This document shows, piece by piece, positions 3,142 through 48,528 of a DNA stretch of 64,000 bases. The notes under the pieces are model-generated. The model saw only the letters and a list, made by a program, of their open reading frames with translations, was not told the DNA's origin and did no database searches. The stretch lies in the IMG/VR virus record IMGVR_UViG_3300040801_001224, positions 186,001-250,000 of that record, one strand, 5' to 3'. The first letter of the stretch is position 1; every line of letters begins with the position of its first letter. Made by a program: the position numbers and the translations under genes.

Positions 3142-4263
3142 ATGCGTTTTAAAGATATAACATTGAACACGATTAATGAAGGCGGTAGCTCAGGCAAGAC
3201 TCGATATAACAGCGAAGTCGCAACTTTATGTGCCTTCTGCGGCGTCAAACATTGGGATGACATTAGACCAGAACAACTAGCAAACCCAGAAGATACTAAG
3301 GCGCAGTTGCGTTATTGGATGGTAGAGAAAAAGAACTATGACGAAAAACTGTTTAACGAATGGCTTGTTCGCGGCAAGGAAATATATACTAAAATAAAAT
3401 CCCATTACAAAGGCCCAATGCCAACCTTGTATGGTTGGGTCGGCGGTGCGAATGTTGGGCCAGTAGCAGATGTTGAGTTTCATGATCATGAACTGTCGGG
3501 AGTCAGCATAAAAGCCAAGGGTGGGATTACACTCGCTAACTTGGGACCGAAGTCAGTCGGTTTACCAACTCCTAAGGGTGTAGATGCTCTACAGCAATAC
3601 GTTGGCAAAGAGTACTTAGAGTTCAAAAAGAACGTATTTACAAAAGTGTTGGCACTAGCAAAGAAACAACCAAACAAGCCATTGAACGGAAGATACACAA
3701 TTGCTTATGTGCCAGAAGTAGATAAGTTTTTATTGAGGCACAAAAAAACTGCTACTGCCGGCCCAGTAGTTGACACGTTGCTTACTGGTCAAGAAATAAT
3801 GACCTTAGGTATGAAAAGCAATAGCGCCTGGCAACGTCCGATTGGTGATTGGTTCCAGGATAACTTAGCCCAGGAGTTTGATTTGATGAAGCCCTTACTG
3901 GATAAGGTTGAAGTGGTTTTATTGGCACTAATAGAAAAGGCTATTGGCGCAAGTGACACTATGAAGTCTATATTACGATTTGAAGACAAGCCCTATTATT
4001 ACGCATCACCAACAAAAATATATTATGTGCCTTCGGCACAAGAAGATCCTGAGTTAGTTTTGAAAAAACTGACCCCAGTTAAAGCTAGGGGCACTGGAAT
4101 AATATTTAGGGCGTATGTGTCTAATGTAGATTCAACATCAAGCGATTATGCGACATACGATGTATATCTAAGATACAGAAATGGGCTGTTTGCTTCTAAC
4201 ATTACAGTGGCGGCACAAAATCTAAAAAATCCACAAAACCTAGCATGGGACGAGGTTGAATGA
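3142..4263 (+). CDS. Hypothetical protein, possible PD-(D/E)xK restriction-like nuclease
   Basis: 373 aa; ADVEF...GVSIK resembles a D...SxK nuclease core; overlaps MTase start (ATGA). Confidence 0.45.
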   Translation: MRFKDITLNTINEGGSSGKTRYNSEVATLCAFCGVKHWDDIRPEQLANPEDTKAQLRYWMVEKKNYDEKLFNEWLVRGKEIYTKIKSHYKGPMPTLYGWVGGANVGPVADVEFHDHELSGVSIKAKGGITLANLGPKSVGLPTPKGVDALQQYVGKEYLEFKKNVFTKVLALAKKQPNKPLNGRYTIAYVPEVDKFLLRHKKTATAGPVVDTLLTGQEIMTLGMKSNSAWQRPIGDWFQDNLAQEFDLMKPLLDKVEVVLLALIEKAIGASDTMKSILRFEDKPYYYASPTKIYYVPSAQEDPELVLKKLTPVKARGTGIIFRAYVSNVDSTSSDYATYDVYLRYRNGLFASNITVAAQNLKNPQNLAWDEVE

Positions 4264-5129
4264 CACACAACATCATATGTAGCGACAACATATCAGCTCT
4301 TAATAAAATAAACGAAAACACATTTGATTCCTGTATAACAGACCCACCGTATGGAATGGGCATGGATGACTGGGATCATACTGTCCCTCCAGTTGAGATC
4401 TGGGAGGCAGTATACCGAACACTAAAACCAGGTGCGTTTGTTTTAAGTTTCTGCTCTCCGGAATTATATCATAGAATGGCAATTAACGTTGAAGATGCTG
4501 GTTTCAGACCATTAGACATGATTACTTGGATTGTTACTACAAAGATGGCAAAAACAAATAGATTAAAGCCAGCACATGAACCTATATTTGTAGCACAAAA
4601 GCCACTACAAGGTTCCATTAAAGCTAATGTTGAAGCATGGGGTTGTGGCGAGATTGATATCGAAGACGCCAGAATACCGTGGGATAAAGAGCCCCCAACG
4701 TATCCTACTGGCGGACATCAGAGAAGAGCATTCGGTAAAGACGTATCTAAAGAAAAACAAGGCAAAAAGAAAGCTAATATCAAAGGAAGATACCCTTCTG
4801 ATGTCATTGGACACTTCGATGATCCGGATCATCAGAAGTATTTTTACGCACCTAGAGCTACAAGAAAAGAACGTGGTGAATACAATGATCACCCAACGCC
4901 TAAGCCTATTAGTTTAATGAGGTATTTGGTTAGAGTTTACTCTCCGAAGGGTGGACACGTACTAGATCCTTTCAATGGCAGTGGTTCAACAGGTATAGCC
5001 GCTATTCAAGAAGGTAGTGAATTTACAGGAATAGACATGTCACAACATTACTGTGATATTGCTGAAAAAAGAATAGCAGACCATTGTGCCGAAACACCTT
5101 TTGAAAAGTTATTTGATTACGAAAAATAA
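4260..5129 (+). CDS. DNA N6-adenine/N4-cytosine methyltransferase, beta class
   Basis: Motif IV TDPPY precedes motif I LDPFNGSGST; HPTPKP. Confidence 0.93.
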   Translation: MTHNIICSDNISALNKINENTFDSCITDPPYGMGMDDWDHTVPPVEIWEAVYRTLKPGAFVLSFCSPELYHRMAINVEDAGFRPLDMITWIVTTKMAKTNRLKPAHEPIFVAQKPLQGSIKANVEAWGCGEIDIEDARIPWDKEPPTYPTGGHQRRAFGKDVSKEKQGKKKANIKGRYPSDVIGHFDDPDHQKYFYAPRATRKERGEYNDHPTPKPISLMRYLVRVYSPKGGHVLDPFNGSGSTGIAAIQEGSEFTGIDMSQHYCDIAEKRIADHCAETPFEKLFDYEK

Positions 5130-5130
5130 C

Positions 5131-5159
5131 TTGACACCCTCCCTTTAATCTGTTATAAT
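5131..5159 (+). promoter_or_regulatory. sigma70 promoter
   Basis: TTGACA-17-TATAAT. Confidence 0.8.
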
Positions 5160-5183
5160 ACTCCAATAACATGGAGATTTAAT

Positions 5184-5363
5184 ATGCCTACGTATTCTTA
5201 CCGCTGTCAGGACTGTGGACACGAATTCGACATCAATCAACGCATGAGTGATGATCCACTGAAAGAATGCCCTGAGTGTAAAAAAGAAGCACTAAAGAAA
5301 ATTATCAAATCAACAGGCGGATTCCAATTGAAAGGATCTGGTTGGTTTAAGGACGGTTACTAA
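5184..5363 (+). CDS. FmdB-family zinc-ribbon protein
   Basis: My translation: MPTYSYRCQDCGHEFDINQRMSDDPLKECPECKKEALKKIIKSTGGFQLKGSGWFKDGY; SD GGAG. Confidence 0.9.
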   Translation: MPTYSYRCQDCGHEFDINQRMSDDPLKECPECKKEALKKIIKSTGGFQLKGSGWFKDGY

Positions 5364-6680: not shown

Positions 6681-6934
6681 TGGGCACCGGCTTTAAGAAT
6701 ATATTTGATGTGTATGTCCCCTATAAGTCTAAGATATTCACTAAATTTTTATGGTTCCCTGAAAGAGTCGGAGGCAAGTGGCACTGGGGTAAGACATATT
6801 ATTATCTTGAAAACTTCTATCAAGGCCATGCGAAAATTTATATGTCTAAAGAAGAAGCGTTTATGGAAGTTATGAAGGGCAATCTTACGTTCGCATCGGA
6901 CGAATGTGTTCACCCGGACGATCGTACTGCTTGA
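6680..6934 (+). CDS. Small Trp-rich paralog 3
   Basis: TKFLWFPERVGGKWHWG. Confidence 0.65.
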   Translation: MGTGFKNIFDVYVPYKSKIFTKFLWFPERVGGKWHWGKTYYYLENFYQGHAKIYMSKEEAFMEVMKGNLTFASDECVHPDDRTA

Positions 6935-7202
6935 ATTTTACGCCTGAACGTTGTTTAGCATTCTCGCCCCCACGATACCCTGGAGTTTGAAATTCATCAT
7001 CTGGATTGTCATGTGGATCATTTGACCAGTGATCTTCTTCAGCAGGTTCTTTTGTGATTACCGGTGTTTCACCTTTAGATTTAGCCGCGATCTGTTGGTA
7101 ACGCTCTTCTTCATCATGTCGAGCGTCAGAATTTTCTGGATTGAATTGATCATCAATTTCATTCCAAACTTGATCAATATCGTAAATTTCTTTTATTTTC
7201 AT
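6885..7202 (-). CDS. Late hypothetical protein (MKIKEI N-terminus)
   Basis: 105 aa; GATAAATA on minus strand at 7234-7241. Confidence 0.75.
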   Translation of the reverse strand: MKIKEIYDIDQVWNEIDDQFNPENSDARHDEEERYQQIAAKSKGETPVITKEPAEEDHWSNDPHDNPDDEFQTPGYRGGENAKQRSGVKFKQYDRPGEHIRPMRT

Positions 7203-7203
7203 G

Positions 7204-7232: not shown

Positions 7233-7267
7233 GTATTTATCACAATTATACTTAAAGGAGAAGTGAA

Positions 7268-7885
7268 ATGGGATTAGTTCCAATGGTAGTAGAGAAAACA
7301 TCACAGGGTGAGCGTTCTTTCGATATTTTTAGTAGGTTATTGAAAGAGAGGACGGTTTTCTTTACAGGTGAGGTACGTGATGAGATGGCCAATCTAATTG
7401 TAGCACAGTTACTTTATTTAGAAGCCGAAGCACCCGAAGCAGACATTACTCTTTATATTAACAGCCCAGGCGGATCGGTGAGTGCAGGCCTCGCTGTATA
7501 TGACACGATGCAATTTATTAAGCCAGACGTTTCTACAATCGTAGCAGGCCAAGCATGTTCGATGGGTTCTTTCATTGCTCAAGCAGGCGCACCTGGCAAG
7601 CGCATGGTATTGCCACAGTCAAGAACAATGGTTCACCGTGTTAGCTCAGGCACACCGGCTACTCGAGGCTCAGTCCACGTGATGGAACATGAATTTGAAG
7701 ACGCCAGGCGCTCATTTGAAGAGTCAAAGCGTGTTAATGAGATCCTTACTCAATTGTACGCCAAGCACAACACAAAAGGTCAGACTTACGAACAGTTGCT
7801 TGAAACCCTTAAATTTGACACCTACCTTTCGGCACAAGAAGCAGTCGACTTTGGGTTAGCTGATCAGATTATCACAAATCGATAA
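7268..7885 (+). CDS. clpP: ATP-dependent Clp protease proteolytic subunit
   Basis: [31 protein letters not shown], catalytic S (GQACSMG), H (MVHR), D (FDTYL). Confidence 0.97.
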
Positions 7886-7913
7886 ATACTTGTAACATAC
7901 TATTATCACTTAT

Positions 7914-8612: not shown

Positions 8613-8618
8613 AGGACT

Positions 8619-23215: not shown

Positions 23216-23404
23216 ATGATGAATAAAGATGAATTTATGGCTGAACACGCATCGACATTAGCATTTATCTCTAAGGTAGATGCGATTAAAGCAACTATTG
23301 GTACGCCTGGGAGTTTGACACTCTCGCAATTAGAGTCATTAGCACCACAATTTGAGAAATTAATACAAGACGAATATGACGCTTACGTAGCAGAAAATTC
23401 ATAA
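23216..23404 (+). CDS. Small hypothetical protein
   Basis: 62 aa, SD AAGGAG. Confidence 0.7.
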   Translation: MMNKDEFMAEHASTLAFISKVDAIKATIGTPGSLTLSQLESLAPQFEKLIQDEYDAYVAENS

Positions 23405-31039: not shown

Positions 31040-31116
31040 ATTGTATTTATCGTAGTTTTTATATAAATCGTAAATAGCAAAATAGTGATAAATAACATAA
31101 ATTAAGGAGTTTTTAC

Positions 31117-32667: not shown

Positions 32668-35600
32668 ATGGCATTAACAAGAGTTACTACAGGTGTAATT
32701 GAAACAAACACTATTTTAGGGCAAGACATTTCGGACGGAACAGTCAGCCTAGATAAATTGGACATTTCTGGCGCACAACCTGGCGACGCGATTGTATTCA
32801 CATCAGGCGGAGCATTAGCATACCAGCCAGTGAACTTGGATAACATTGGTGACGTATCAACTTCAGGTGCTGACATCGGTGACGCATTAGTATGGAATGG
32901 TACAGGTTGGGCTCCAGGCACTCCAGTTGGTGGTGGCTCAGGTGGTTCAGGTATTGACACTTTAGACGAGCTATTAGATGTATCATTAACACCATTGAGC
33001 GCAGGACAGTACCTAAAGTGGAATGGTAGTGTATGGACTAATGACGTTATTGATTATAGTGAAATTGCTAACACACCATTTATCCCATTGAACTTTGGTG
33101 ATTTGGGTGATGTAACATTAACAGGGCCTGTAGCGAATCAGGTAGCAGTATTTGACGGTACTAACTGGGTTAACCTAGCTGTAACTAAATCGTTAATAAG
33201 CGACTTCAATGACGCTGACTATGCCACACAAGCGCAGGGCGCATTGGCTGATACAGCACTACAGGGTGGCGAGAACATAAGCATTTTTGCTAACGATGCC
33301 GGCTACCTAACGGCAGGTACAGCAGTTGGCGCAATAGGATTAGAGCCAGTGGCATTAAGCGGTTCATATAATGACTTAACTGATGTTCCAACAGAGTTTA
33401 ATCCAACGGTACACGCCCATGTTAAAGCAGACATTACGGATTTTGACGATGCTGATTACGCAACATCAGCACAAGGTGCTCTAGCAGATACAGCACTACA
33501 AGGTGGCGAAAATATTAGTATATTTGCTAACGACGCCGGTTACTTAACATCAGCAACGGGCGGTGCTTCATTAGGTCTTGCTCCTGTAGCTACATCTGGT
33601 GATTATGCGGATTTAACAAACATTCCAAGCACATTTGCTCCGTCAGCACACACCCACGTTAAAGCACAGATTACAGACTTTAGCGATAGTGACTATGCGA
33701 CAGCGGCCCAAGGTGCTCTAGCAACTTCAGCAGTACAACCAGGTGATTTAAGTACAGTTGCTACAACAGGCGACTACAATGATTTAGCAAATATTCCAGC
33801 GACAGCTACGCCATCTGCTCATACACATACTAAGTCAGATATTACAGACTTTGATGACGCAGATTACGCTACAGCAATACAAGGGCTAAAGGCAGACACT
33901 GCTCTACAATCAGGTGATGTTGCTACATTAGCTTTAAGTGGACTATGGGGTGACATTATCGGTAAACCAACAACGTTTACACCAGATGCTCATACTCACT
34001 TAAAAGCAGATATTACAGATTTTAATGACGCTGACTACGCTTCAGCGGCACAGGGTGTTCTTGCTAATACAGCAGTTCAACCAGGTGAAAACATTAGCAT
34101 ATTTGCTAATGACGAAGGCTTCCTAAGCACAAACATCGCAGGATCACTACCAGGACAGTTTGTTTACTTTGATGGTACTGATTGGACTAACAAGACACTT
34201 GCTAAGTCAGACATTTCAAACTTCGATGACAGCGATTACGCAACATCAGCACAGGGTGTCCTAGCAACAACAGCCTTACAGCCAGGCGACAACGTAAGTG
34301 ATCTAGTTAATGATGCTGGTTACTTCAGTGACGTTGCCGTTAACACCGGGACATTATCATCAGGTGATGCTCTATTGTTTGACGGTACTATTTGGAGAAA
34401 CCGTCCAATTGAATTAGCTGATATCGTTGATTATGATGGCAATATTTATGCTACAGCGGCACAAGGTGCTCTGGCTGATAGCTCATTACAGCCAGGATCG
34501 GATGTTTCGGTCCTTACGAACAATGTTGGTTACTTAACAGGCGACAGTATTCTAAATGACTTATTAGACGTTATCGCTGTTACACCAGACGCTGGTGACG
34601 TACTACGGTGGGATGGCAGTGAGTGGGTTAACAGCCCAGATAGTATTGATACACTAACCCTAGACGACGTTACGGACGTTGATGTTAGTGGCGCAGTACC
34701 AGGACAGATACTAACGTTCGACGGCACAGGCTGGATTGCTTCAGGCGCTAATGGTGGCACTGGTGAAACTAACACAGCAAGCAACATTGGTCCAGGTGAA
34801 GGCATATTTGCTACTAAGACTGGTGTTGATTTAGAATTTAAGTCAATCCTAGCAGGTTCAGGCGTAAGTGTTACTGATTTTGGCAATAACCTAACACTAG
34901 CATTGGACGCAGGTTTAAGCAACTTAGATGACGTTGACACAAGTGGCGCAGTTGCTAACCAAATCCTACGTTTCAATGGTACTGAGTGGGTTGCTTCTAC
35001 AGAATCACCAACAGCAGGCGAGGCTAACACATTTAGTTCACGTCCAGGCACTGGTGAAGAAGTAATTGCCAGTAAAATTGGCGTGGACCTACAGTTCAAG
35101 AGATTACGTGCTTCAGGTAACATTGTGTTATCTTCAGATGGTAACGAAATTACTATTGGCACAGCATCTAACGTTGGTGAAGCAAATACAGCAAGTAACG
35201 TTGGCACAGGTGCTGGCCTATTCTTACAGAAAACTGGCACTGACTTAGAATTTAAGACATTACTAGCAGGTCCTAACGTTACATTAACGCAAGGCGCAAC
35301 AGAAGTACAGATTGAGTCATTTAACCCATTAGAAAGTGTGAGTAACTTACAGGAAGGTGATGGCTTAATTTACGAATCAGGTGCTTGGAACAATCGTCCA
35401 CTACTAAAAGCAGACATTAGCAACTTCAGTGATGCTGATTATGCGACAGCGGCACAAGGTGCTCTAGCTGATAGTGCGGCACAGCCAGGCGATAGCATTA
35501 GCATATTCGACAATGACACAGGTTACTTAACAGGTAGCTCAATCCTTAACGACTTACTAGATGTTGACGTTGATGGTAACCCTGACCCTCTAGTAGCAGG

Positions 35601-38600
35601 ACAAATCCTACGCTGGAACGGCGTACAGTGGGTTAACGACAACGAGTCTACTGACCTAACAGCAAGTAACTTGGGTGATGGTGAAGATGTATTCTTCCAG
35701 AAGAACGTTAATGACTTGGAATTTAGAACAATTAAAGCGGGTTCAGGCATTAACATCACTGTTAACGGCAACAATGCTCTAGAGATTGAATCTACAGCAT
35801 CAGGCGCAGGTGAAGCAAACACAGCAAGCAACCGTGGCGCAGGTGAAGGCGTGTTCTTCCAGAAGACAGGCGCAGATTTAGAATTTAAGTCATTAATTGC
35901 TGGCGCAAACATTACGCTATCAAGCGATGATGATGGCATTACTATTGAGTCAACAGGTGGTGGTAGTGCTTCAGAGCTGGATGACCTAACGGACGTTACA
36001 ATTGTTGGCACACCAGCGGCTAACAACGTATTATTCCACAATGGTTCAGTATGGCGTAACGGAACAATTTTGGAAGCAGGTTTAGCTACTGCGGCACAAG
36101 GCGCCCTAGCAGAATCGGCACTACAGAATATTAATTCAGAATCAATTACTGAACTATTAGACGTTGACACAACAGGCGCAACAACTAACGATGTATTAAC
36201 ATTTAATGGTACAAGTTGGGTGCCAGGCGCTCCTGCTACTGGCGGCATTGACTGGACTGTAGATCAGAATGGTTCAGCAGTAATTCACCCAGGCAACTAC
36301 ACCAATACTGATGCTTTTGCTGACTTAACTGATGTAGACTTAGGTGGAGGAGCTATTGCTCTAGCACCAGGCCAGATTCCAGTATACAATGGCATAAATT
36401 GGGTTAATACTGGCGGTGTTAGTTCTTTTGATGGTACTGCTACGTACTTAACATACAATACGCCAGCAGTTGGCGAAGTCCTAGTCACAGCAAGTGTGTC
36501 AGGAAGCAATGTTATAATGCAGAACCAAGCGTTCACATTAGAAAATTTAACTGATACAGACAACACTGGTACAGCGGCAGATGGCGAAGTACTAACGTGG
36601 ATTGCGGCAAACAACAAATGGGAACCACAAGCAGTAAGTGGCAACCAATTCCCTGACCCACTTGACGCTTACGAATATATCGTTGGTGGTGAGCAAGGTG
36701 GTGAAGATAATGGCTGGGATATCAGAGATGTTCGTGAACTGCCAAGAAGAAGGAAAGATTTCCAGGTATCACGTTCAGTAGAAGACACTGACATAAATGC
36801 TCTATTGATCGCAGAAGGCGCAGGTGCCAAAACATATACTCTGGACGAATTAAACTTCCCAGGTTTTGAAGGTACTGACTTTTACCAGATAACGATGCAC
36901 AACAGAGGTGTCGACCCAGTGACAATAACATCGGGTCTTAACGCAGAAGTAATTTCGCCAAATGGTCGAGCACCAGTATTGAATCAAGGTGAAACAGTTA
37001 CGATATCAAGAATTTCACTAGGCGGCTTTGATCGTTGGGTATTAGACTTCAGCACACAAACTATCAATGATCTAGTTGGCACTCAAAACTTATCAACGGC
37101 CGCAGATGGCCAAGTTATTGCTTGGAACCAGACTGCTGGTTTATGGGAGCCACAGACTGTGTCAGCTGGTGGCGGTGGTGTCACAGAATTAACGGCACTT
37201 AACGATACAATTGGCACAGCAGTAGCTAATGGTTTCCTACGTTGGAACGCAGGCGGAACAACCGTTGAGTACGTTTCAATTGTTAAAGCAGATATTACAG
37301 ATTTTAATGACGCTGACTATGCGACGGCCGCACAAGGTGCTCTAGCAGATACAGCACTACAGTCAGGCGCAAACATTAGCTTATTAACTAATGATGCCGG
37401 TTATCTAACAACAGCTATCCAACAGAATGATAACATTAGTCTGCTAACAAACGATGCTGGTTATATAACATCGGCACCGAGCGTTATTGATGACTTAGGT
37501 GATGTTGATACGACTTCAGTAGTTCCTAACAATGGTGAAGTACTAGGTTGGGACGGTTCTAATTGGGTACCAACAGCAGTATCATCAGGTGTTACAAACT
37601 TAACATGGAATCCTGCTACACAATCTGTGAACAGTGATACTGGTACGGACGCAGTTATTCCAAACGTACTTCCAGCAGGCACATCAGGCTTAATGAGTGG
37701 CGCTGACAAGACTAAGTTAGATAATATACAAGATGGTGCTGAAATAAACCAGAACGCATTCACAAGCGTAGCATTAACGGGCAACGTAACAGGTGACGCT
37801 AGTATAGACGCTGATGCGAAGACAGATACGCTAAATATAGTAGCAGGCACAAACGTAAGTATTGTGGGCGATGGTTCTACTGATACGATTACAATTAATG
37901 CGGCTCCAGGCGGTGGTGCTACAAACTTAAGTACTACTAATGTTACGGCAACTAACGTGGATGTAGCAAGTGACACTGGCACAGACGCAACTCTACCAGC
38001 AGTGACTACAACTACAGCAGGTCTAATGACAGCATCAGATAAGACTGCTCTAGATGGACTTGCAGGTGCAGAAGCTAACCAGAACGCATTCAGTAACTTT
38101 GCGTTAACTGGCAACACGGCAGGTGACACAACTATATCGGCAGACACGCCTACTGACAGTGTTACACTTGTTGGTGGCTCAAACGTCACACTAACAGGTA
38201 ACGCGGCCGGTGACCAGATCATAATTGATGCCGCAGGCGGTGGTGCTGGTGGTGGCGCACAGACTGAGGATCTAGTGGTACGCTATACTTCGGGCTCAGG
38301 CGGTACACTAAACGCAGGTGACGTAATTGTAAGTACAACATCAGGCATTAGTGCTACGGTTGTTGACGGTGCTAACTCAATTGTTGAGATATCATTCACT
38401 GGTTATAACTTACCGCCAGCAAGTATTGTGGCTTATGGTCAGAACTACTCAAGTAATGTTTGGTCTATTAAGGGCTTAGGTAGCTTAGTGGCAAGTGCGT
38501 CTCAAACAGTGAACGACACAGGCTCAGCGGCTAACCCAGATATACTGAATACTGGTGTAGCATGTCCACCAATACGTTTACAGATTAGAATGTCAGATAC

Positions 38601-38664
38601 AGGCAGTTCAGCAGGCTTCGGCCAACGTGCTCAAGCACTAATTAGACTAGTAATGTTAGGATAA
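32668..38664 (+). CDS. Large repetitive tail-fibre/spike protein (about 1998 aa)
   Basis: Start reassigned to MALTRV (SD AAGGA); about 9-10 D(F)xDADYATxAQG repeats, five DLxF(K/R) repeats, many LxDLxDV repeats. Confidence 0.85.
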   Translation: MALTRVTTGVIETNTILGQDISDGTVSLDKLDISGAQPGDAIVFTSGGALAYQPVNLDNIGDVSTSGADIGDALVWNGTGWAPGTPVGGGSGGSGIDTLDELLDVSLTPLSAGQYLKWNGSVWTNDVIDYSEIANTPFIPLNFGDLGDVTLTGPVANQVAVFDGTNWVNLAVTKSLISDFNDADYATQAQGALADTALQGGENISIFANDAGYLTAGTAVGAIGLEPVALSGSYNDLTDVPTEFNPTVHAHVKADITDFDDADYATSAQGALADTALQGGENISIFANDAGYLTSATGGASLGLAPVATSGDYADLTNIPSTFAPSAHTHVKAQITDFSDSDYATAAQGALATSAVQPGDLSTVATTGDYNDLANIPATATPSAHTHTKSDITDFDDADYATAIQGLKADTALQSGDVATLALSGLWGDIIGKPTTFTPDAHTHLKADITDFNDADYASAAQGVLANTAVQPGENISIFANDEGFLSTNIAGSLPGQFVYFDGTDWTNKTLAKSDISNFDDSDYATSAQGVLATTALQPGDNVSDLVNDAGYFSDVAVNTGTLSSGDALLFDGTIWRNRPIELADIVDYDGNIYATAAQGALADSSLQPGSDVSVLTNNVGYLTGDSILNDLLDVIAVTPDAGDVLRWDGSEWVNSPDSIDTLTLDDVTDVDVSGAVPGQILTFDGTGWIASGANGGTGETNTASNIGPGEGIFATKTGVDLEFKSILAGSGVSVTDFGNNLTLALDAGLSNLDDVDTSGAVANQILRFNGTEWVASTESPTAGEANTFSSRPGTGEEVIASKIGVDLQFKRLRASGNIVLSSDGNEITIGTASNVGEANTASNVGTGAGLFLQKTGTDLEFKTLLAGPNVTLTQGATEVQIESFNPLESVSNLQEGDGLIYESGAWNNRPLLKADISNFSDADYATAAQGALADSAAQPGDSISIFDNDTGYLTGSSILNDLLDVDVDGNPDPLVAGQILRWNGVQWVNDNESTDLTASNLGDGEDVFFQKNVNDLEFRTIKAGSGINITVNGNNALEIESTASGAGEANTASNRGAGEGVFFQKTGADLEFKSLIAGANITLSSDDDGITIESTGGGSASELDDLTDVTIVGTPAANNVLFHNGSVWRNGTILEAGLATAAQGALAESALQNINSESITELLDVDTTGATTNDVLTFNGTSWVPGAPATGGIDWTVDQNGSAVIHPGNYTNTDAFADLTDVDLGGGAIALAPGQIPVYNGINWVNTGGVSSFDGTATYLTYNTPAVGEVLVTASVSGSNVIMQNQAFTLENLTDTDNTGTAADGEVLTWIAANNKWEPQAVSGNQFPDPLDAYEYIVGGEQGGEDNGWDIRDVRELPRRRKDFQVSRSVEDTDINALLIAEGAGAKTYTLDELNFPGFEGTDFYQITMHNRGVDPVTITSGLNAEVISPNGRAPVLNQGETVTISRISLGGFDRWVLDFSTQTINDLVGTQNLSTAADGQVIAWNQTAGLWEPQTVSAGGGGVTELTALNDTIGTAVANGFLRWNAGGTTVEYVSIVKADITDFNDADYATAAQGALADTALQSGANISLLTNDAGYLTTAIQQNDNISLLTNDAGYITSAPSVIDDLGDVDTTSVVPNNGEVLGWDGSNWVPTAVSSGVTNLTWNPATQSVNSDTGTDAVIPNVLPAGTSGLMSGADKTKLDNIQDGAEINQNAFTSVALTGNVTGDASIDADAKTDTLNIVAGTNVSIVGDGSTDTITINAAPGGGATNLSTTNVTATNVDVASDTGTDATLPAVTTTTAGLMTASDKTALDGLAGAEANQNAFSNFALTGNTAGDTTISADTPTDSVTLVGGSNVTLTGNAAGDQIIIDAAGGGAGGGAQTEDLVVRYTSGSGGTLNAGDVIVSTTSGISATVVDGANSIVEISFTGYNLPPASIVAYGQNYSSNVWSIKGLGSLVASASQTVNDTGSAANPDILNTGVACPPIRLQIRMSDTGSSAGFGQRAQALIRLVMLG

Positions 38665-38670
38665 AATTAA

Positions 38671-40641
38671 ATGGCAATTAACATACCTTCAAGAGTTATC
38701 AATGGTGATATTATATCTTCAGTTGGCGTAGAGTTTTGGCCCTATGATGACGGAACTGGCGACCCATGGTGGGCTGGTGGTGGAACACCACGTGACTATC
38801 GTTGGTCATTAGAGATCAGTATCATCCCACAAACTCACTCAAGTCACTTAACGAGAGATGACTATGAATTTAACGGGTATGACGTAAGACTGGGTGACTG
38901 GATTGCTAGTTCTACAACGGGTACAACAGTACAGATCGTTGAAGTGACGTCAAAAACAGCATCTAGTATTACGGTTATTGTTGAAGACGTTGTTCGTTAT
39001 AACACATTTAGAGCACCAGGTGCTACTGGTAACGGTAGCATTGGTGTTGGTCAGTGTATTATCTTTGAACTAAACGAAGAGGGTGAACCAATGGTTGACC
39101 CGATTCCACCAGCAGGTGTTAGTGCTGTTTTCTTCAGTAACTTAATGTCACGCTTTCAGAACATCAACGAACAATTTGATTTTAACCTAACACAAGTTGG
39201 CCATACTTTTCAGAAGGGTGATATTATAAGTGTAGATTCAGACTCAGGTAACTTTGTTTTATCTGATAATACATTTACAACAGTTATTGGCCAAGTAACT
39301 GACGTTGGTCCTACTCCGGACCAGTTCTTTATCAATCCGGTGCAAAAGATTGTTAATGACTTCGATACTCTCCCGGGAGCAATCACTGATATACTATATA
39401 CTGATAACGCAGGCGGTTTAACCACAAGTCCTTCATCAGGTAAGATGATGTATATTAAATTGCGTGAGAATACGCAGAGTACAGCAGTGGGACAAGTAAT
39501 CGATGGTACAACAACACCAGGCAATGTAATTGAAATTAATGGATCACCAATCACAATCAGTGGCGCAGGTGATATTCCGGCGGCTATTTCAGCGATTAAC
39601 TTAAATACTGGCGTTACAGGGATTACGGCAGATTCAGTAACAGCTCCGACGCAGGTAGACACATCTCTACCATTATTTTACGGTGAGCCAGCATTATATA
39701 CAGTGCCAACCCCAGCAACGGCAACAATCAATGGTGTGACGGTTACATTTGATATTGATACAGTGGGCTTGTCAACATATGCTCTAAATCTAGCATTAGA
39801 AGAAGATATGGCGGCCGCCATTAATCGTGACATGCTTGCGGCGGGCAATACAGATATTGTTGCGACTACAAATACAAATAATTTAATTATATCAAACAAC
39901 TCAGGTGGTGCGATTACAATAAGTAATGGCGCAGTTGATCAATCTGGTGTGGCATTTGCCGGTAATAACTCAGGCTCAGGGGTTGAACTATTGACTCCTG
40001 CTGGCTCCGGTTCATACTTACGTTTAACCGCACCGGACGCAAGACCAATTGACATTTTTGATGTCGCAGGAACACCAAGTGTTGATTACGGCATATACAG
40101 CGCAGAAAACGGCGCAAAGGCCGCGGCAATATATGTTGAACAAGGGCTACGTACTGGCGGTACCACAGTAGTAGCTGATATTCCATCCAGGGACGCACTA
40201 AATCCTTTCATTGGAGACCAAGTAATGGTACTAGACAAAGGCAACGGAGAATGGGAACTATATTTATATGACGGCAGTGTGTACATTCCAGTAGCCAACC
40301 AAGACTCGGCGAGAACAGACGCTAACTCAGTAGACTTGATTGTTGATTTCAATGATCCAGCACTACAGGAGATAGTAACGGTGAGTTCACAGTCGAGAAT
40401 CACACTCATCACAGTAGAAGTAATTACGCCATTTGATGGCTCACCAACATTGACAGTGGGCATAAGCCCAGATCTAGATTTGTTGTTCACAGATGATCTG
40501 CATGATTTAAGCACAGTCGGTTCATATGCTTATCAGACAGATTACTACTTTGACACAGGCGTCGACACAGATATATTAGTTAATTACATTGCCAATGGCG
40601 CAACACAAGGCCAGGCAAGAATTATTGTAAGTTACATGTAA
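38671..40641 (+). CDS. Virion structural protein
   Basis: 656 aa, G/T/D-rich beta composition, within the fibre operon. Confidence 0.75.
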   Translation: MAINIPSRVINGDIISSVGVEFWPYDDGTGDPWWAGGGTPRDYRWSLEISIIPQTHSSHLTRDDYEFNGYDVRLGDWIASSTTGTTVQIVEVTSKTASSITVIVEDVVRYNTFRAPGATGNGSIGVGQCIIFELNEEGEPMVDPIPPAGVSAVFFSNLMSRFQNINEQFDFNLTQVGHTFQKGDIISVDSDSGNFVLSDNTFTTVIGQVTDVGPTPDQFFINPVQKIVNDFDTLPGAITDILYTDNAGGLTTSPSSGKMMYIKLRENTQSTAVGQVIDGTTTPGNVIEINGSPITISGAGDIPAAISAINLNTGVTGITADSVTAPTQVDTSLPLFYGEPALYTVPTPATATINGVTVTFDIDTVGLSTYALNLALEEDMAAAINRDMLAAGNTDIVATTNTNNLIISNNSGGAITISNGAVDQSGVAFAGNNSGSGVELLTPAGSGSYLRLTAPDARPIDIFDVAGTPSVDYGIYSAENGAKAAAIYVEQGLRTGGTTVVADIPSRDALNPFIGDQVMVLDKGNGEWELYLYDGSVYIPVANQDSARTDANSVDLIVDFNDPALQEIVTVSSQSRITLITVEVITPFDGSPTLTVGISPDLDLLFTDDLHDLSTVGSYAYQTDYYFDTGVDTDILVNYIANGATQGQARIIVSYM

Positions 40642-40724
40642 ATGTAATTTAAGCATCTTATAACTTATCTGCAAGATTCCGATAAATAACTGTAACAATG
40701 GGCGGGACTCATTGGAGTCCTACT

Positions 40725-40746
40725 TTATTGTTATCGATAACAATAA
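40725..40746. repeat. Perfect 22-bp palindrome in the leader of the 916-aa structural gene
   Basis: TTATTGTTATCGATAACAATAA, between the late box at 40683 and the SD. Confidence 0.8.
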
Positions 40747-40773
40747 TTTTACATAAATAGGAGATTAAAATTT

Positions 40774-43524
40774 ATGGCAACTTCAAAACAATTCGGTCTA
40801 CGTGGTATAGGTTCGGACGTACAGCTAGGTAAAGCTGGCGGTCGTTTCGTATTCGACGGTACAGACTTCAACATGACAGGCACTGACGGCTCTACGCTAG
40901 TCAACGTTTCTGGTGCTGAGCCTACATTAGGCACTCACTTAACTACAAAGAACTACGTTGATTCAGTAAGCTCAGGCCTAGATCCGAAAGAATCGGTACG
41001 TGTTGCTACAACAGCTAACATCGACTTAGGCACAGGCGGTCTATTAACAATTGACGGTGTTACTCTACAGGCAGGCGATCGTGTTCTTGTTAAAGATCAG
41101 ACAACAGCTACAGAAAATGGTATCTACGTTGCGGCGGCAGGTGCATGGTCTCGTTCAGAGGACATGGACGGTACTCCAGCTTCTGAAGTATCAGGTGGTA
41201 ACTTCACATTCGTTGAGCAAGGTACAGCTAACATCAACAGTGGTTGGGTTGTACAGGGTGACGGCATCCTAACGTTAGGTACTAACGCCATCACTTGGGT
41301 ACAGTTCTCAGGTGCTGGTTCAATTACAGCAGGTGTAGCATTAACAAAAGTTGGTGAAACATTAAACGTTGACTTATTCGACGGTGACGTTCCAAACCAA
41401 ATCCCAACAATGACTGCTACGGTTGATTCTGCAGATTTACTGATGATTGGTGATACTTCGGAATCTACTACATTAGTTAAGTCAGTAGGTGACGTACTAA
41501 ACGACTTAGACGTTCCTCAATTCCCAGCTTTTGCTCAATCTGCATTAATTACACGTACTGCTGATGACGTTTACGTTGAGACAGTATTTGGTGCTTCTAC
41601 AACAGCTGGTCAGGAAGGCTTAGTGTTCAACGCTTCTAACACTGCTCCATCATTTGGTCTAAACATTGATGGTCTAACAGGTGCCGGTACACTAACAGGT
41701 GCAGAAGAAATTGCGGTATTTGACGGTAATAACAACGTTAAAGCTTCAATCAACGACATCATTGCTGATCGTGACCTAGTTACAGCGGCTGACGCTCTAA
41801 CAGGTATGGTACAGATCACTGGTGGCGTACTTACTTCAACTTCAGTCACTGCTTCATCAGCGGCTAACCGTTTAGGTATTGACGTACAGAACGGTGGTAC
41901 TGCTCCAGTAGTTGGTTTAAACATCAACGGCTTAACTGGTACTACACTAGAATTAACTGACGAACTAGCAGTTTACAGTACTTCTAATGCTACTAACGAA
42001 AAAGCTACAATCCAGAACATCGTTGACTTAGTTGCGGCTAACTCTTCAGATAACGAAATTTCAGAAGGCGATAGCTCTGTAACAGTTACAGACGCAGGTA
42101 CTGGTACAATTACAACTACTGTTGACAATACAGTTGTAATGACAGCTACAGCAGGTGGCGTAGACGTTACTTCACTAACAGTTGACAGCTTAACAGCAGG
42201 TCAGGTTGTTTACGCAGGTACAGACGGTCTACTAACTACAGAAGCTGGTTTCGAGTACAATGACACTACTGATACTTTATCAGCGGCTAACATCTCAGCA
42301 ACTACTTCTGGTACGTTCGCAAGCGCGGCAGTAAGCGACTTAACATCAGGTCGTGTTGTACTAGCAGGTACAGCTGGTGAGTTAGAAGATTCAGCAGACT
42401 TAACGTTCAACGGCACTAACTTAGTTGTTGGCGGCACAGCTGGTCTACAGGTTGCAGGCAACATTGCTACAACTTCTGGTTCAATCACAGCGGCTGGCGG
42501 TTTAATCGACAGCACATTATCAGTTAACAACGGTGTTGTAACTACAAACGCTTCAGGTGCTTTACAGCAGTCAGCTAACTTCACATTCGATGGTTCTACA
42601 ATGACTATCGCTGGTGACGTTGACATTACTGGTTCACTAGACGTTGATAACATTGCTATTGACGGCAACACAATTAGCTCAACTGATACAGATGGCGACA
42701 TCATCATTGCTCCTAACGGCAACGGCGAAGTAATCATTGGTAACGCTGGTAGCCCAGCTCAGTTAATCGCTGAAGACGATCAGTCACTAACAGTTGCTGG
42801 TGGTGCTGGTACATCTACAGCAGGCGGTGATCTAAACCTATTCGGTGGTGACGGCGCAGGCGCAATTGACGGTGGCGACGTAACTATCCAGGCTGGTTCT
42901 TCAGCTTCAGGTACTGCGGGTACTACACTATTCCTAGACGCTAACGACAACGTTGTAGCACAGATCCTTAACTCTGCGGCTTCAACTGACGGCACTCTAG
43001 ACTTATCAGCTGGCGCAAGCATTGCGGCTTCTGGTACAGCGGCTAACATTGACATTACTCTTGATCCTAAGGGTACTGGCACTGTTATCGTTGGTGACGA
43101 GGCTACTTACTCAGCTAACATGGTTGACGCAAGTCTTACAACTAAGGCATACCTTGACTCACAGATTAGTGCTAACGTAGTTCCTGGTTCACTAGCAAGT
43201 GTATCTGGCACAATCGACCTAAGCTCAGCAGGCGCACAGAACATTGGCGCGGCAGACGGCATCCCAGCTAACGCAACGATCCTAGAAGTTACAATGGACG
43301 TTACAGCGGCTTCGAATGCGGCTACAACAGTTACTTTTGGTGACAGTTCAAACGGTGCGGCAAGCTACATGGCTGACACTGAGAACGATCCAGAAACTAC
43401 TGGCCTATACATTGGTGACGCTCGCGTTACTAACGGCGGTACTGCTCAGCAAGCTCAAGCAACAGTTGCTACACCAGGCGCATCTGGTAGCGCATTTGTT
43501 GTTATTACTTTTAGAAATGCCTAA
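40774..43524 (+). CDS. Virion fibre/whisker-like structural protein
   Basis: HLTTKNYVD..GLDPKESVRVAT..GDRVLVKDQT..ENGIY..WSRSED module typical of jumbo-phage fibres; late promoter; followed by terminator. Confidence 0.8.
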   Translation: MATSKQFGLRGIGSDVQLGKAGGRFVFDGTDFNMTGTDGSTLVNVSGAEPTLGTHLTTKNYVDSVSSGLDPKESVRVATTANIDLGTGGLLTIDGVTLQAGDRVLVKDQTTATENGIYVAAAGAWSRSEDMDGTPASEVSGGNFTFVEQGTANINSGWVVQGDGILTLGTNAITWVQFSGAGSITAGVALTKVGETLNVDLFDGDVPNQIPTMTATVDSADLLMIGDTSESTTLVKSVGDVLNDLDVPQFPAFAQSALITRTADDVYVETVFGASTTAGQEGLVFNASNTAPSFGLNIDGLTGAGTLTGAEEIAVFDGNNNVKASINDIIADRDLVTAADALTGMVQITGGVLTSTSVTASSAANRLGIDVQNGGTAPVVGLNINGLTGTTLELTDELAVYSTSNATNEKATIQNIVDLVAANSSDNEISEGDSSVTVTDAGTGTITTTVDNTVVMTATAGGVDVTSLTVDSLTAGQVVYAGTDGLLTTEAGFEYNDTTDTLSAANISATTSGTFASAAVSDLTSGRVVLAGTAGELEDSADLTFNGTNLVVGGTAGLQVAGNIATTSGSITAAGGLIDSTLSVNNGVVTTNASGALQQSANFTFDGSTMTIAGDVDITGSLDVDNIAIDGNTISSTDTDGDIIIAPNGNGEVIIGNAGSPAQLIAEDDQSLTVAGGAGTSTAGGDLNLFGGDGAGAIDGGDVTIQAGSSASGTAGTTLFLDANDNVVAQILNSAASTDGTLDLSAGASIAASGTAANIDITLDPKGTGTVIVGDEATYSANMVDASLTTKAYLDSQISANVVPGSLASVSGTIDLSSAGAQNIGAADGIPANATILEVTMDVTAASNAATTVTFGDSSNGAASYMADTENDPETTGLYIGDARVTNGGTAQQAQATVATPGASGSAFVVITFRNA

Positions 43525-45721: not shown

Positions 45722-45740
45722 AACTTTTTCAAACTAACGC

Positions 45741-45768
45741 AAAGGGTTCTTAGGAGCCCTTTTCTTTT
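45741..45768 (+). terminator. Intrinsic terminator
   Basis: AAAGGGTTCT-tagg-AGCCCTTTTCTTTT. Confidence 0.7.
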
Positions 45769-45801
45769 GATTTCACATTCACAAACAAGATAAATATTAT
45801 T

Positions 45802-46299
45802 ATGCGTGTAGAAGAAGTTAAAGATGATGATACATACAAGATTAAGTATACTAAATTGGACTATGGCGATTTCTGTGACATGTTTGGAGAAAATGTTGCT
45901 ATACACGTATACGCAGAATATATAATATCAGAGTGCAATCTTTTGGAGAGTAATAGCGAAGAATCTATTGCTGAATTTGATTCACTCGAAGGCGAGAAGC
46001 CAGTTGTCGGAAATATCTATTATGGTTTACACATTGGATTAACCAATGGAAAAATACAACCCCTAGGTAATTTTAAAGGAAAAGTGGATAGTGTAATCTC
46101 CAATCCATTTGGTGATACATATATTATAGAACTTAAGGACGGCACCAAGGCCCCCTATCCACAATATGATACACAAGAAATCTTAAAATCAAAAGTTTTG
46201 CTATCATCGTCCAAGGAAGATCATGAATCAGAGATGATGTCTATGAAATTAAAATTCGGTATAGATTTTGACGCAATAAGAGAGCAAATGGTAGTCTAA
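45802..46299 (+). CDS. Late hypothetical protein (leaderless; MRVEEV)
   Basis: ATG 5 nt after TAAATA(45791-45796). Confidence 0.7.
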   Translation: MRVEEVKDDDTYKIKYTKLDYGDFCDMFGENVAIHVYAEYIISECNLLESNSEESIAEFDSLEGEKPVVGNIYYGLHIGLTNGKIQPLGNFKGKVDSVISNPFGDTYIIELKDGTKAPYPQYDTQEILKSKVLLSSSKEDHESEMMSMKLKFGIDFDAIREQMVV

Positions 46300-46383
46300 A
46301 AAAATTTGACTTCAATTTCACTAGACTACGCTATCTGTCATTCCAATGATAAATACTAATATAATAAAAATAGGGCAAACACC

Positions 46384-46773
46384 ATGAGTACATTTAAAGC
46401 AGGCGCTAGACCTCACGTAATCGAGGAACATGAGAAGCCAGTAGAAGAAACAAACGTATTAGGAAAACATTGGAGAACAGCGTGTGCTATAATCTACCTA
46501 GTTATCTGTGTGTTCGATTTCTTAATAATGCCAGCAATGTTAACTCAGTATAGTAAAGAGCAAGATTACTCTCAATTATTTATTGAGATTTCAAAGCTAG
46601 AAAGTCCACAGGCACAAACGGCATTAATCAACAAGATTGATTATAGCGTACAAACATGGGATCCTATTACACTACAGGGCGCAGGAATGTTCCATGTAGC
46701 ATTTGGTGCTATTTTAACAGGTGTTGTGTTATCACGTACAGGAAGGGAAAGAATCACTAGAAGGGTTGATTAA
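46384..46773 (+). CDS. Holin-like membrane protein (3TM/GTA-holin-like)
   Basis: HWRTACAIIYLVICVFDFLIMP...W.PITLQGAGMFHVAFGAIL; late box at 46350. Confidence 0.65.
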   Translation: MSTFKAGARPHVIEEHEKPVEETNVLGKHWRTACAIIYLVICVFDFLIMPAMLTQYSKEQDYSQLFIEISKLESPQAQTALINKIDYSVQTWDPITLQGAGMFHVAFGAILTGVVLSRTGRERITRRVD

Positions 46774-47225
46774 TGAGACTGTATGAGATTGATAGTGAGC
46801 CGGGAACATATGTTTCTGTAAGGTTTACTAAAGACACAAATAAAAAATTACGTGAGTTTGCTCTAAGTTTGGGTTTAAAGCCTATTGACAAATTTCACAT
46901 TACTGTAGTTTATTCACCAAAACCATTAGGTGTAGAATTTGGCGAGAGCAGATTTAACGGATCTGCTAAAATAACTGGCATAGATTATTTAGGTGATATT
47001 GACTCTGAGTACAGGGCAGTTGTATTGCACGTTGATTCAAAAGAAGTACAAAATTTATATGATACGTATGAAGTAATACATGGGTACAAACACACATATG
47101 ATGAGTTTATCCAGCACGTGAGTTTAGCTTATCGGCCACCAGAGGATTTGGATTTAAGTCAAGTAGATTTACCAGACTTTGAAATAGAATTTAGTTACGT
47201 AAAAATTGAGGCATTAAAAGAATGA
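46773..47225 (+). CDS. 2H phosphoesterase, T4 gp57B/Acb1 (anti-CBASS)-like
   Basis: GTYVSVRF, FHITVVYS, HTYDEFIQHVSLAY and terminal EALK parallel the T4 57B pattern. Confidence 0.85.
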   Translation: MRLYEIDSEPGTYVSVRFTKDTNKKLREFALSLGLKPIDKFHITVVYSPKPLGVEFGESRFNGSAKITGIDYLGDIDSEYRAVVLHVDSKEVQNLYDTYEVIHGYKHTYDEFIQHVSLAYRPPEDLDLSQVDLPDFEIEFSYVKIEALKE

Positions 47226-47806
47226 GAGCAAGCGAATTATTAAACGAAAGCATGGATTTTTCTGTATCTGAGTTGAAAGACTACAAAGGCACACATCCTA
47301 AATTTCAGGGTAAGAAAATATGGTACCCAGTTGGACAAGAAGAAGACGTTGAATGTTGGGCATGTAAAGGCCAGGGTTGGGAAGACTTTGGGCCTGAATA
47401 CGGCAAGGAAGAATGTCGTGTATGTGACGGAGAAGGCACACGCAATGAATTCGTTAGTGTTGGTCCAGAGTTTAACGTGTCTAATTCCAATGGTTATGAG
47501 ATACAGCGTATGATGGGATTAGATCCAGACTACAGTGGTTCACTACAGGGTGAAGAAATAACGACTGTTTTGCGTAGATTAATTAAATTAAAGAATACAG
47601 ATAGTTCAGCACATACTCGTGACGTGTCAGATGAACGTGGCGAAGCACGAGCCGTTAAGGGTGATGATGGCGTAGACCGCATACAGCGTGGTCCTAGAAT
47701 GGTGGATTTTGGTCGCACTCAAGAACAGGTAAATCGTTACCTAGACGATATGATTGAACTGCTACAGTTTGCCAAAAAGAACGGATATGGAGTGACTTGG
47801 GGCTAA
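47222..47806 (+). CDS. Late protein with DnaJ-type zinc finger
   Basis: CWACKGQG...CRVCDGEG; N-terminus MRASELLNE. Confidence 0.65.
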   Translation: MRASELLNESMDFSVSELKDYKGTHPKFQGKKIWYPVGQEEDVECWACKGQGWEDFGPEYGKEECRVCDGEGTRNEFVSVGPEFNVSNSNGYEIQRMMGLDPDYSGSLQGEEITTVLRRLIKLKNTDSSAHTRDVSDERGEARAVKGDDGVDRIQRGPRMVDFGRTQEQVNRYLDDMIELLQFAKKNGYGVTWG

Positions 47807-47807
47807 T

Positions 47808-48119
47808 ATGTACGCAACATTAAAAACGCAGAGTGAAATGGGTGAAGAATTATTCCAGGACGTATTCATTGTAATGGATGATGCCCTAGAGATAACAAAT
47901 GTGTTGACTTTCGATGATGAAGGCAATAGAATAGAGACAGTAGCAACACTAGACTATTTGAGTGACAAAGATGACTATGGTGTTGAATACGAGTTCGATG
48001 TAAACAAGAAATTAACTGTTGAAGAAGGTGAGCAGTTAATGGACGCATTAAACCAAGTTTTAAAATATGATTACGAATTAGATTTACCTATAGATAAGGA
48101 TAGTTACAATGAAAGTTAA
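47808..48119 (+). CDS. Acidic hypothetical protein
   Basis: 103-aa ORF in operon. Confidence 0.7.
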   Translation: MYATLKTQSEMGEELFQDVFIVMDDALEITNVLTFDDEGNRIETVATLDYLSDKDDYGVEYEFDVNKKLTVEEGEQLMDALNQVLKYDYELDLPIDKDSYNES

Positions 48120-48528
48120 CGATATTATTTACGAGTCAGACGAAGCTCATAGAGAAAAAGTCAAAAAGATGATGGACACGATGGACCGAGAGCGTGAACG
48201 TGCGGCTCAAATGAAAGCCAAGCGTAAAGAACGTGAGGAGCAGGAACGTCCAGAACGTGAACGTCGAGCTAAAGCCCATAAAGAAAAGATGATCAAGCAA
48301 CAGAATCGTCTGGACACAATTGCTAAAGGTCACAACGACTATGAAACGTTTGAGCAGGCAGTAGAGCGTGAAATGGGTGAAAAAGTATCCAACAACTATG
48401 GACTGATGCAGAGTACATGGCACAAGATCCATCCAATGGGTGACGAAGAAACCAAAGACTATTACACTGGATGGGCAAATTCTCACAGTGATCTAGCCAG
48501 AAAAACAGGTGGCTGGACTGGAGATTAA
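48109..48528 (+). CDS. Late charged coiled-coil protein (MKVNDI N-terminus)
   Basis: 139-aa ORF overlapping previous gene. Confidence 0.7.
   Translation: MKVNDIIYESDEAHREKVKKMMDTMDRERERAAQMKAKRKEREEQERPERERRAKAHKEKMIKQQNRLDTIAKGHNDYETFEQAVEREMGEKVSNNYGLMQSTWHKIHPMGDEETKDYYTGWANSHSDLARKTGGWTGD

Follow-up and report, generated by a model that had tools for sequence, protein, structure and literature searches.

An N-terminal leader shared by unrelated proteins

We analysed a 64,000-nucleotide window, bases 186,001-250,000 of virus record IMGVR_UViG_3300040801_001224 (328,096 bp, complete, with direct terminal repeats), for a short N-terminal leader that recurs on otherwise unrelated phage proteins. 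The genome has a G+C content of about 40% and carries nearly all of its genes on one strand; a simple caller based on codon bias and ribosome-binding sites placed 485 genes on it. The phage is an uncultured, T4-related jumbo phage. About 150 relatives of its capsid protein are found in IMG/VR, some of them (81-84% identity) in complete genomes of 347-385 kb. Among cultured phages, Pseudomonas phage PA5oct (Arenbergviridae; 78.6% identity) is the nearest by capsid protein, and the capsid protein of phage CBB (Mimasvirus) is farther off at 68%.

A preliminary description of the window had listed six proteins starting with M-[KR]-x-x-[ED]-[ILV] and proposed that this tag targets late, non-structural proteins to the capsid for injection. 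The residues and coordinates of all six N termini were correct, and in each case the Met is the first possible start after an upstream in-frame stop. The six genes are listed here, with a slash marking the predicted cleavage position where the leader has one.

3142..4263, plus strand: restriction-endonuclease-like protein, 373 aa; leader MRFKDITLNTINE13/GG, with an I-x-E end
6885..7202, minus strand: acidic protein, 105 aa; starts MKIKEIYDID; ATAAATA box at 7234-7240(-), 31 nt upstream
45802..46299, plus strand: ORFan, 165 aa; starts MRVEEVKDDD; first gene of a late operon
46773..47225, plus strand: Acb1-like 2H phosphoesterase; leader MRLYEIDSE/PG; Pfam PF23474, 61.5 bits (cut-off 27)
47222..47806, plus strand: DnaJ-type zinc-finger protein, 194 aa; leader MRASELLNE/S
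48109..48528, plus strand: K/R/E-rich ORFan, 139 aa; canonical leader MKVNDIIYE/S

The leader is enriched genome-wide and selected as a peptide

Across the whole genome the six-residue pattern stands at the start of 19 of the 485 proteins, while 4.45 would be expected from positional residue frequencies (Poisson p 2.6e-7). The same pattern follows an internal Met in only 7 of 2146 cases (Fisher p 1.5e-9 against protein starts). Twelve of the 19 carriers lie outside the window, where 3.4 are expected (p 2.4e-4); these were never seen when the preliminary description was made, so this test is independent of its choices. The list of six was thus incomplete.

Two positions that the pattern leaves free are strongly biased among the carriers. 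Residue 3 is L, I, V, A, or F in 19 of 19 (background 0.35, p 2e-9). Glu stands at residue 9 in 10 of 19 (background 0.10, p 3e-6), usually with Ser or Gly next. Hydrophobic-x-[ED] occupies residues 3-5 in every carrier, and Glu9 is usually preceded by hydrophobic-x at residues 7-8. Given the bias at residues 3 and 9, the actual motif is nine residues long, M-[RK]-hydrophobic-x-[ED]-[IL]-hydrophobic-x-E, as in MRLRELITE/G, MRLSELVLE/S, MRLDEILKE/E, MKVNDIIYE/S, and MRASELLNE/S.

BLASTP among the 19 carriers found no paralogy, in agreement with the earlier statement that the proteins are otherwise unrelated, and common descent of the carriers was ruled out as the origin of the shared N terminus. 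Arg at residue 2 is encoded by AGA six times, AGG once, and CGN five times, and Leu at residue 3 by codons from both CTN and TTA. Since both amino acids draw on both of their codon families, selection acts on the peptide. A DNA-level repeat or promoter element was likewise ruled out, because upstream DNA differs between the genes and the codons vary.

The carriers with recognisable domains are the Acb1-like 2H phosphoesterase, an NMNAT-like nucleotidyltransferase, a GNAT acetyltransferase, a 676-aa amidoligase-domain protein, and a HIT protein. One further carrier belongs to a PHROG annotated as virion structural protein, and the remaining carriers are ORFans. With about four chance matches expected among the 19, the leader is present on about 15-19 otherwise unrelated, mostly late proteins.

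Conservation of the leader in homologous families

The protein encoded at 3142 has 74 viral homologues. Most keep M-R-hydrophobic-x-E-hydrophobic, and nearly all have a leader of 10-18 residues ending in hydrophobic-x-E/GG. The 47222 protein was aligned with eleven homologues that are 31-65% identical to it over residues 1-60, and every one of them keeps M-[RK]-x-x-[ED]-[LIV]-hydrophobic-x-E; M1, E9, and F13 are invariant in this family, and residues 14-40 diverge. In AlphaFold2 models, the 3142 protein (predicted local distance difference test [pLDDT] score of 91.9) has residues 1-15 below 50 and a fold that begins near residue 17, and the 47222 protein (pLDDT 86.6) has residues 1-7 below 50 and its first strand from residue 10. 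In both models the leader is thus predicted to be disordered and to lie outside the fold, which would begin directly after the predicted cleavage Glu.

The Pfam Acb1 match in the 46773 protein begins at residue 11, after the leader. The protein has two H-x-T/S catalytic motifs, H42-I-T and H115-V-S; profile and motifs together mark it as an Acb1-like protein with predicted anti-CBASS activity. Homologue P0002 keeps the leader (MRLDEIIQE). Homologue P0003, on a T4-like contig, has the different leader MSFKKFLELME... on the same domain, and homologue P0004 has MKSFNQFLSE, a near copy of the pattern of the T4 capsid-targeting sequence (CTS). The Acb1 domain, from GTYVSV... onward, therefore carries three different leaders in three phages. 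We found no homologue of the 46773 gene in five related complete genomes. On the P0003 contig (L183) the Acb1 gene follows two Gp23-family genes, with a Tad2-like gene about 3 kb upstream, and on the P0004 contig it has a Tad6-family gene and a cytidylyltransferase-like gene nearby.

The first six residues of the 48109 protein are those of another gene of the genome, at 276658, which starts MKVNDIIKE/G. The case for leader membership is strong for 3142, 46773, 47222, and 48109. It is weak or uncertain for 45802, whose N terminus is atypical, with Val at residue 6 and a sequence that departs from hydrophobic-x-E at residues 7-9. No homologue of 45802 was found in PA5oct or in the IMG/VR scan, and no relatives of 48109 in the IMG/VR scan or a large protein search, so that conservation of these two leaders cannot be checked. 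Membership is also uncertain for 7202(-). Its PA5oct homologue, EST35_0271, contains MKIKEIILE, is annotated five N-terminal residues longer, and was not detected in virions.

A further match in the window is the following gene.

61811..62155, plus strand: HIT-family protein; starts MKFEDI; in a mixed early/late unit

The preliminary description had rightly cautioned that this protein fits the pattern while not being obviously late. Its Pfam HIT match begins at residue 10, aligned to profile position 7, which leaves no room for an appended leader; the match is probably due to chance.

The motif is specific to one phage clade and associated with PA5oct virions

We applied the strict six-residue pattern to three relatives and two outgroup control phages. 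It was enriched in two environmental genomes, G001 (369 kb; 11 against 3.0 expected, p 2.7e-4) and G003 (385 kb; 9 against 3.9, p 0.018), and in PA5oct (8 against 1.7, p 4.6e-4). There was no enrichment in CBB (1 against 4.3 expected) or in T4 (2 against 2.0). This contrast identifies the strict consensus as clade-specific and not as a general feature of N termini.

Mass spectrometry has identified 93 virion proteins among the 461 coding sequences of PA5oct (PMC7318152); we took these from the GenBank record (MK797984), where they are marked ESI-MS/MS. Five of the eight strict-motif proteins of PA5oct are so marked (EST35_0150, 0205, 0230, 0238, and 0380), against the base rate of 93/461 (p 0.010). 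Unmarked are 0075, the weak match 0422, and 0382, a 64-aa protein whose gene neighbours the marked 0380 and 0381. If Phe or Met is also accepted at residue 6, the marked 0381 and 0175 and the unmarked 0264 join the set, giving 7 of 11 (p 0.0018), and additionally requiring a hydrophobic residue 3 gives 7 of 9 (p 2.8e-4); both widened patterns were picked after the data had been seen. EST35_0175 is a 70-aa protein encoded beside dihydrofolate reductase, far from any structural module. At 260677-262300(-), the consecutive EST35_0380, 0381, and 0382 start MRLNEINLIE, MKILEFNLTE, and MKLSEICILE. Neither propeptides nor a common N terminus are mentioned in the PA5oct paper (PMC7318152), and in the open-access literature that we found, "capsid targeting" was never used together with the RaK2/PA5oct group.

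Most carriers lie in late-type transcription units

Two promoter classes could be recognised in the genome: about 90 sigma70-like promoters, TTGAC[AT]-N16-18-TA[TAC]AAT, and about 91 ATAAATA boxes (mostly GATAAATA) at most 60 nt from a gene start. The protease, scaffold, capsid, and giant structural genes are likewise found in units behind ATAAATA boxes. When each gene was assigned to its nearest upstream promoter on the same strand, 16 of the 210 genes in late-type (ATAAATA) units were carriers, and 1 of the 213 in early-type (sigma70) units (Fisher p 1e-4). Equal frequency among early genes, which the preliminary description had named as the outcome that would speak against its proposal, was thus not what we found. 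As a real, protein-level, and late-biased feature the tag described there holds, and it is specific to one clade.

Four of the window carriers (45802, 46773, 47222, and 48109) form a single late operon, 45802-48528, which is bracketed by the following elements.

45741..45762, plus strand: intrinsic terminator, closing the unit upstream of 45802
45790..45796, plus strand: late-type ATAAATA box with 5 nt between it and the ATG of 45802; predicted to give a leaderless transcript
48532..48560, plus strand: perfect sigma70-type promoter, opening the next early-type unit and marking the end of the late operon

All six genes had been placed downstream of TAAATA boxes. This is largely right: it holds for the four genes of the operon and for 7202(-), but the promoter nearest to 3142 is of the sigma70 type, as the surroundings of that gene show.

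1627..1633, plus strand: ATAAATA late-type box upstream of the 1661 gene, 1.5 kb before 3142 and its only such box
3107..3135, plus strand: perfect sigma70-type promoter, TTGACA-17-TATAAT, with 6 nt between the -10 element and the ATG of 3142

A transcript from the nearer promoter would be early-type and probably leaderless. Because the ATAAATA box stands upstream of the preceding gene, read-through could give 3142 early plus late expression. Its family conserves the leader nonetheless. The promoter had made 3142 a candidate for a chance match, which was dropped in view of that conservation.

The N termini could also be alike because of a translation or mRNA feature of late genes, such as a downstream box on leaderless or coupled messages. 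The motif is indeed specific to late-type units, and four or five of the genome's 26 leaderless ATAAATA-N5-ATG starts are on motif genes. But most of the 17 such starts that are called genes lack the motif, and most carriers are not leaderless, having Shine-Dalgarno or overlapping stop-start contexts. Arg, Leu, and Glu/Asp are coded by different codon families, orthologues conserve the amino acids at 31-65% identity, and the tagged PA5oct proteins are enriched in virions. We regard this explanation as very improbable.

Chance, helped by compositional bias at N termini (Lys or Arg at residue 2, acidic and hydrophobic residues, an AT-rich phage), would account for a few matches, as the six-residue pattern has low information and would match about four times per genome; HIT, 45802, and 7202(-) could be such cases. 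As an account of the whole set it is effectively refuted already, by the genome-wide p of 2.6e-7, replication outside the window and in three relatives, flat counts in CBB and T4, bias at unselected positions, and restriction to late units.

An ATAAATA box exactly 5 nt before ATG occurs 26 times in the genome, against 2-7 times at other spacings (2-12 nt). Seventeen of these sites are called gene starts and would give leaderless late mRNAs; examples in the window are 45790-45804, 58140-58154, and 31039-31050(-). The spacing spike is common to G001 and G003 (N4-5) and PA5oct, and is absent from CBB and T4.

The head module carries the leader and encodes a gp21-like protease

The head module of the genome follows the T4 gene order of portal, 81-aa protein, 262-aa protein, protease, scaffold, and capsid protein.

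Genome 75921: portal-position gene
Genome 77648: 81-aa gp67-position protein; leader MKAKDLLVE/F
Genome 78837-79466: S77 gp21-like prohead protease; PF03420, 94.4 bits, E 1.1e-27
Between protease and capsid gene: scaffold-position protein, 370 aa
Genome 80606-81784: Gp23-family capsid protein; PF07068, 270.8 bits, E 2.4e-81

The protein at the gp67 position is itself a carrier. Of its homologues in IMG/VR loci, 49 were retrieved, and about 30 of these have kept M-[KR]-A-x-[ED]-[LM]-L-V-E-[FY]. The propeptide junction of the capsid protein was located by where the conserved core begins in alignment with relatives, and is ..MLRE44/SASAGAT here, LAE/S in G001 and G003, and LVE/N in PA5oct. Its placement also drew on the cleavage site of T4 gp23. 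At the level of sequence, MLRE44/S fits an L/I-x-E type of specificity, and the leader ends in hydrophobic-x-Glu like a prohead-protease cleavage motif. Sites of the L/I-x-E type are cut by T4 gp21 in Alt (ITE-6 and LTE-619) and in gp21 itself (LIE-9) (PMC5694885, PMC9026906). A co-fold prediction that paired the S77 protease with the first 40 residues of the 47222 protein scored 0.01, which counts neither way.

The window also encodes a ClpP-family protein (7268-7885) that matches a PHROG named "head maturation protease" (E 3.5e-42), so the phage may have two head proteases. The PA5oct counterpart of this protein is EST35_0272.

The leader partly resembles the T4 capsid-targeting sequence

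The T4 CTS, MKTYQEFIAE, is carried by IPI, IPII, and IPIII, which are internal proteins, and by Alt (PMC9026906, PMC3012670). T4 Alt starts MELITELFDE and T4 gp24 starts MAKINELLRE. The CTS found on T4's internal proteins was reportedly described by Mullaney and Black in 1996. All three T4 sequences share with the new leader the core [ED]-hydrophobic-hydrophobic-x-E, which stands one residue earlier in the new leader. In T4, as here, a short N-terminal leader with Lys or Arg at residue 2 (MKTYQEFIAE) and a hydrophobic-x-Glu end stands on unrelated proteins; a gp21-type protease is encoded along with a head module in T4 order; and the cargo includes enzymes (Alt in T4), within a tagged set that is diverse and poorly conserved between relatives.

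A relaxed pattern built on this core, M-x(1-5)-[ED]-hydrophobic-hydrophobic-x-E anchored at the start and within the first ten residues, gave six hits in T4 as a positive control, including IPII, IPIII, gp24, and Alt. In the present genome it gave 14 hits; 13 of them fall in late units and 1 is unassigned, and early units have none. One hit in the window was not in the earlier list.

23216..23404, plus strand: 62-aa protein in a late-type unit; starts MMNKDEFMAE/H

This start resembles the ten-residue T4 CTS more than the clade consensus does.

Proposed function of the leader

We think it rather probable that the leader is a lineage-specific version of the T4 CTS and propeptide. A short, unstructured, acidic-hydrophobic leader (9 residues, or 10-18 in the nuclease family) would recruit unrelated proteins into the prohead core; the S77 gp21-like protease would remove it at the hydrophobic-x-Glu site; and the mature protein would stay in the virion, deliverable together with the DNA. 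The capsid-targeting part of the preliminary description gains support from the late bias, the gp21-type protease, the likeness to the CTS core, the carrier at the gp67 position, and virion association in PA5oct. The rest we infer: that the leader brings about incorporation, where it is cleaved (Glu5, Glu9, or Glu13 in the 3142 family), that the proteins lie in the head interior, and that they are injected and act in counter-defence. Probable cargo would comprise the Acb1-like phosphodiesterase, the nuclease-like protein paired with a methylase, the GNAT and amidoligase-domain proteins, the NMNAT-like nucleotidyltransferase, and about ten ORFans.

The leader could instead signal another fate: timed unfolding or degradation by a phage-encoded Clp-type machine, incorporation into a part of the virion other than the head, or a protease site that does no targeting. 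The window does encode a ClpA/B-like AAA+ protein (27150-30485) and a J-domain protein (26435-27166) in addition to the ClpP-family protein, whose PA5oct counterpart was itself detected in virions. Cleavage after residue 5 would expose Leu or Ile, and the PA5oct mass spectrometry does not place proteins within the virion. But the same leader is found on the prohead-core protein at the gp67 position inside the head module, tagged PA5oct proteins persist into mature particles, and the pattern fits both the T4 CTS core and the capsid propeptide junction. On balance we consider another fate unlikely.

Several points weigh against capsid targeting. The leader differs from MKTYQEFIAE in consensus and in register, being one residue shorter. 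The NMNAT-like, GNAT, and amidoligase carriers are enzymes expected to work in the cytoplasm, and homologues of the NMNAT-like protein in relatives lack the leader. An early-type promoter stands directly before 3142. Three or four PA5oct carriers were undetected in virions, where about two chance matches are expected. The PA5oct data rest on 8-11 proteins, in part through patterns widened post hoc, and give virion association as distinct from a place inside the head; all virion support comes from that phage, the present one being known from its sequence. The identity of the processing enzyme is uncertain because the ClpP-family "head maturation protease" is also encoded. Finally, gene calls and transcription-unit assignments come from a crude in-house caller working from the sequence only.

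More broadly, we tentatively suggest that the PA5oct-like phages (Arenbergviridae and a large uncultured sister group) pre-load their capsids by means of a portable nine-residue label. At least 15 fast-turnover proteins per genome, including Acb1 and a methylase-protected nuclease, might be loaded in this way, so that anti-defence and takeover enzymes would arrive before phage gene expression.

Comparison with known systems and significance

The principle of a CTS, and of internal proteins that share an N-terminal motif, is already known from T4 and its T-even relatives. What is new is the consensus and its use in this phage group, how many carriers there are and how widely they are dispersed, and the cargo classes, above all a leader-bearing Acb1. 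The new leader, unlike the T4 CTS, has its first hydrophobic-x-acidic site already at residues 3-5. Its carriers number about 15-19 over more than 200 kb, against a handful in T4, and Acb1-like, restriction-nuclease-like, GNAT, and amidoligase proteins would be new classes of cargo compared with T4, their packaging here being predicted from sequence.

In the variable internal-protein locus of T-even phages, Bas37_0260 was identified by its conserved internal-protein N-terminal motif (PMC13716836). There too, a conserved N-terminal motif marks out anti-defence proteins that are unrelated to one another and that turn over fast between relatives; those carriers are confined to a single locus and bear the T4 CTS itself, whereas here they are dispersed and have another consensus. 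The phiKZ-like giants SPN3US, 201phi2-1, and phiKZ have propeptides that in most cases exceed 100 residues, with cleavage at S/A/G-x-E (PMC5694885, PMC7411985). Like the present phage they are jumbo phages with a T4-related prohead protease, and many of their head proteins are processed after Glu, but no short common tag has been reported for them and they are unrelated to the PA5oct-like clade.

T4 Acb1 (gp57B) is an anti-CBASS phosphodiesterase (PMC9117128); the 46773 domain differs from it in carrying an appended leader of 9-10 residues. We found no mention of Acb1 packaging in the literature searched. In T4 (AF158101), 57B adjoins ipI (73591-74410(-)) and starts MMEFKDFST, compared with MKTFKEFTST in IPI. 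T4 gp61.1 (54 aa; 18966-19130(-)) starts MKTFKEFIKE, which is CTS-like, as is the start of 57B. On these N termini, a further possibility is that T4 Acb1 may be an overlooked internal protein.

If the capsid-targeting reading is true, a sequence rule would predict which proteins are packaged and probably injected, both in PA5oct, a therapy candidate in which 73 of the 93 virion proteins lack an assigned role, and across a widespread clade of environmental jumbo phages. The injected proteome of uncultured phages would become readable from metagenomes. Anti-CBASS (Acb1) and nuclease activities would be delivered pre-made, which would change the view of the timing of defence and counter-defence. 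The leader would also be a second independent short tag, beside the T4 CTS, for loading foreign proteins into large capsids.

The nuclease-like protein, its partner, and other genes of the window

In the alignment of the 3142 family, D110 and K124 never vary and at least 90% of sequences keep S122; these residues would correspond to the D...(D/E/S)-x-K catalytic motif of PD-(D/E)XK type II restriction endonucleases. VIA-align gave weak fold matches, to HinP1I (Z 5.6) and MspI (Z 4.4). When the 3142 and 47222 models were compared with the PDB by Foldseek, neither had a significant match. The Atlas gave a feature-level link of 3142 to RE_HaeIII clusters. Assignment of 3142 as a putative restriction-type nuclease, from alignment and model, is reasonable but unproven. 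Its 3' neighbour overlaps its stop codon.

4260..5129, plus strand: N6/N4 DNA methyltransferase; Pfam PF01555, E 6.7e-36

The pairing of nuclease-like protein and methylase recurs beside homologue P0026 on contig L201, and the methylase is likely the nuclease's protective partner. Ahead of 3142 lies the gene of a conserved 480-aa protein (1661-3103), with a 487-aa gene in the corresponding place in L198. Neither the cargo operon nor the 480-aa protein had a match when window genes were compared with a phage collection by megablast and tblastn.

Very large genes at 32668-43524 (1998, 656, and 916 aa) are presumably structural; the two that were scanned had no Pfam match. A 650-aa FG-GAP repeat protein (19718-21670) has a signal-peptide-like start. 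The J-domain gene is followed by that of the 1111-aa ClpA/B-like AAA+ protein (26435-30485 together), which has an intein-like LAGLIDADG/Hom_end insertion, and the family B DNA polymerase (49301-51670) has an intein splicing domain at its C-terminal end.

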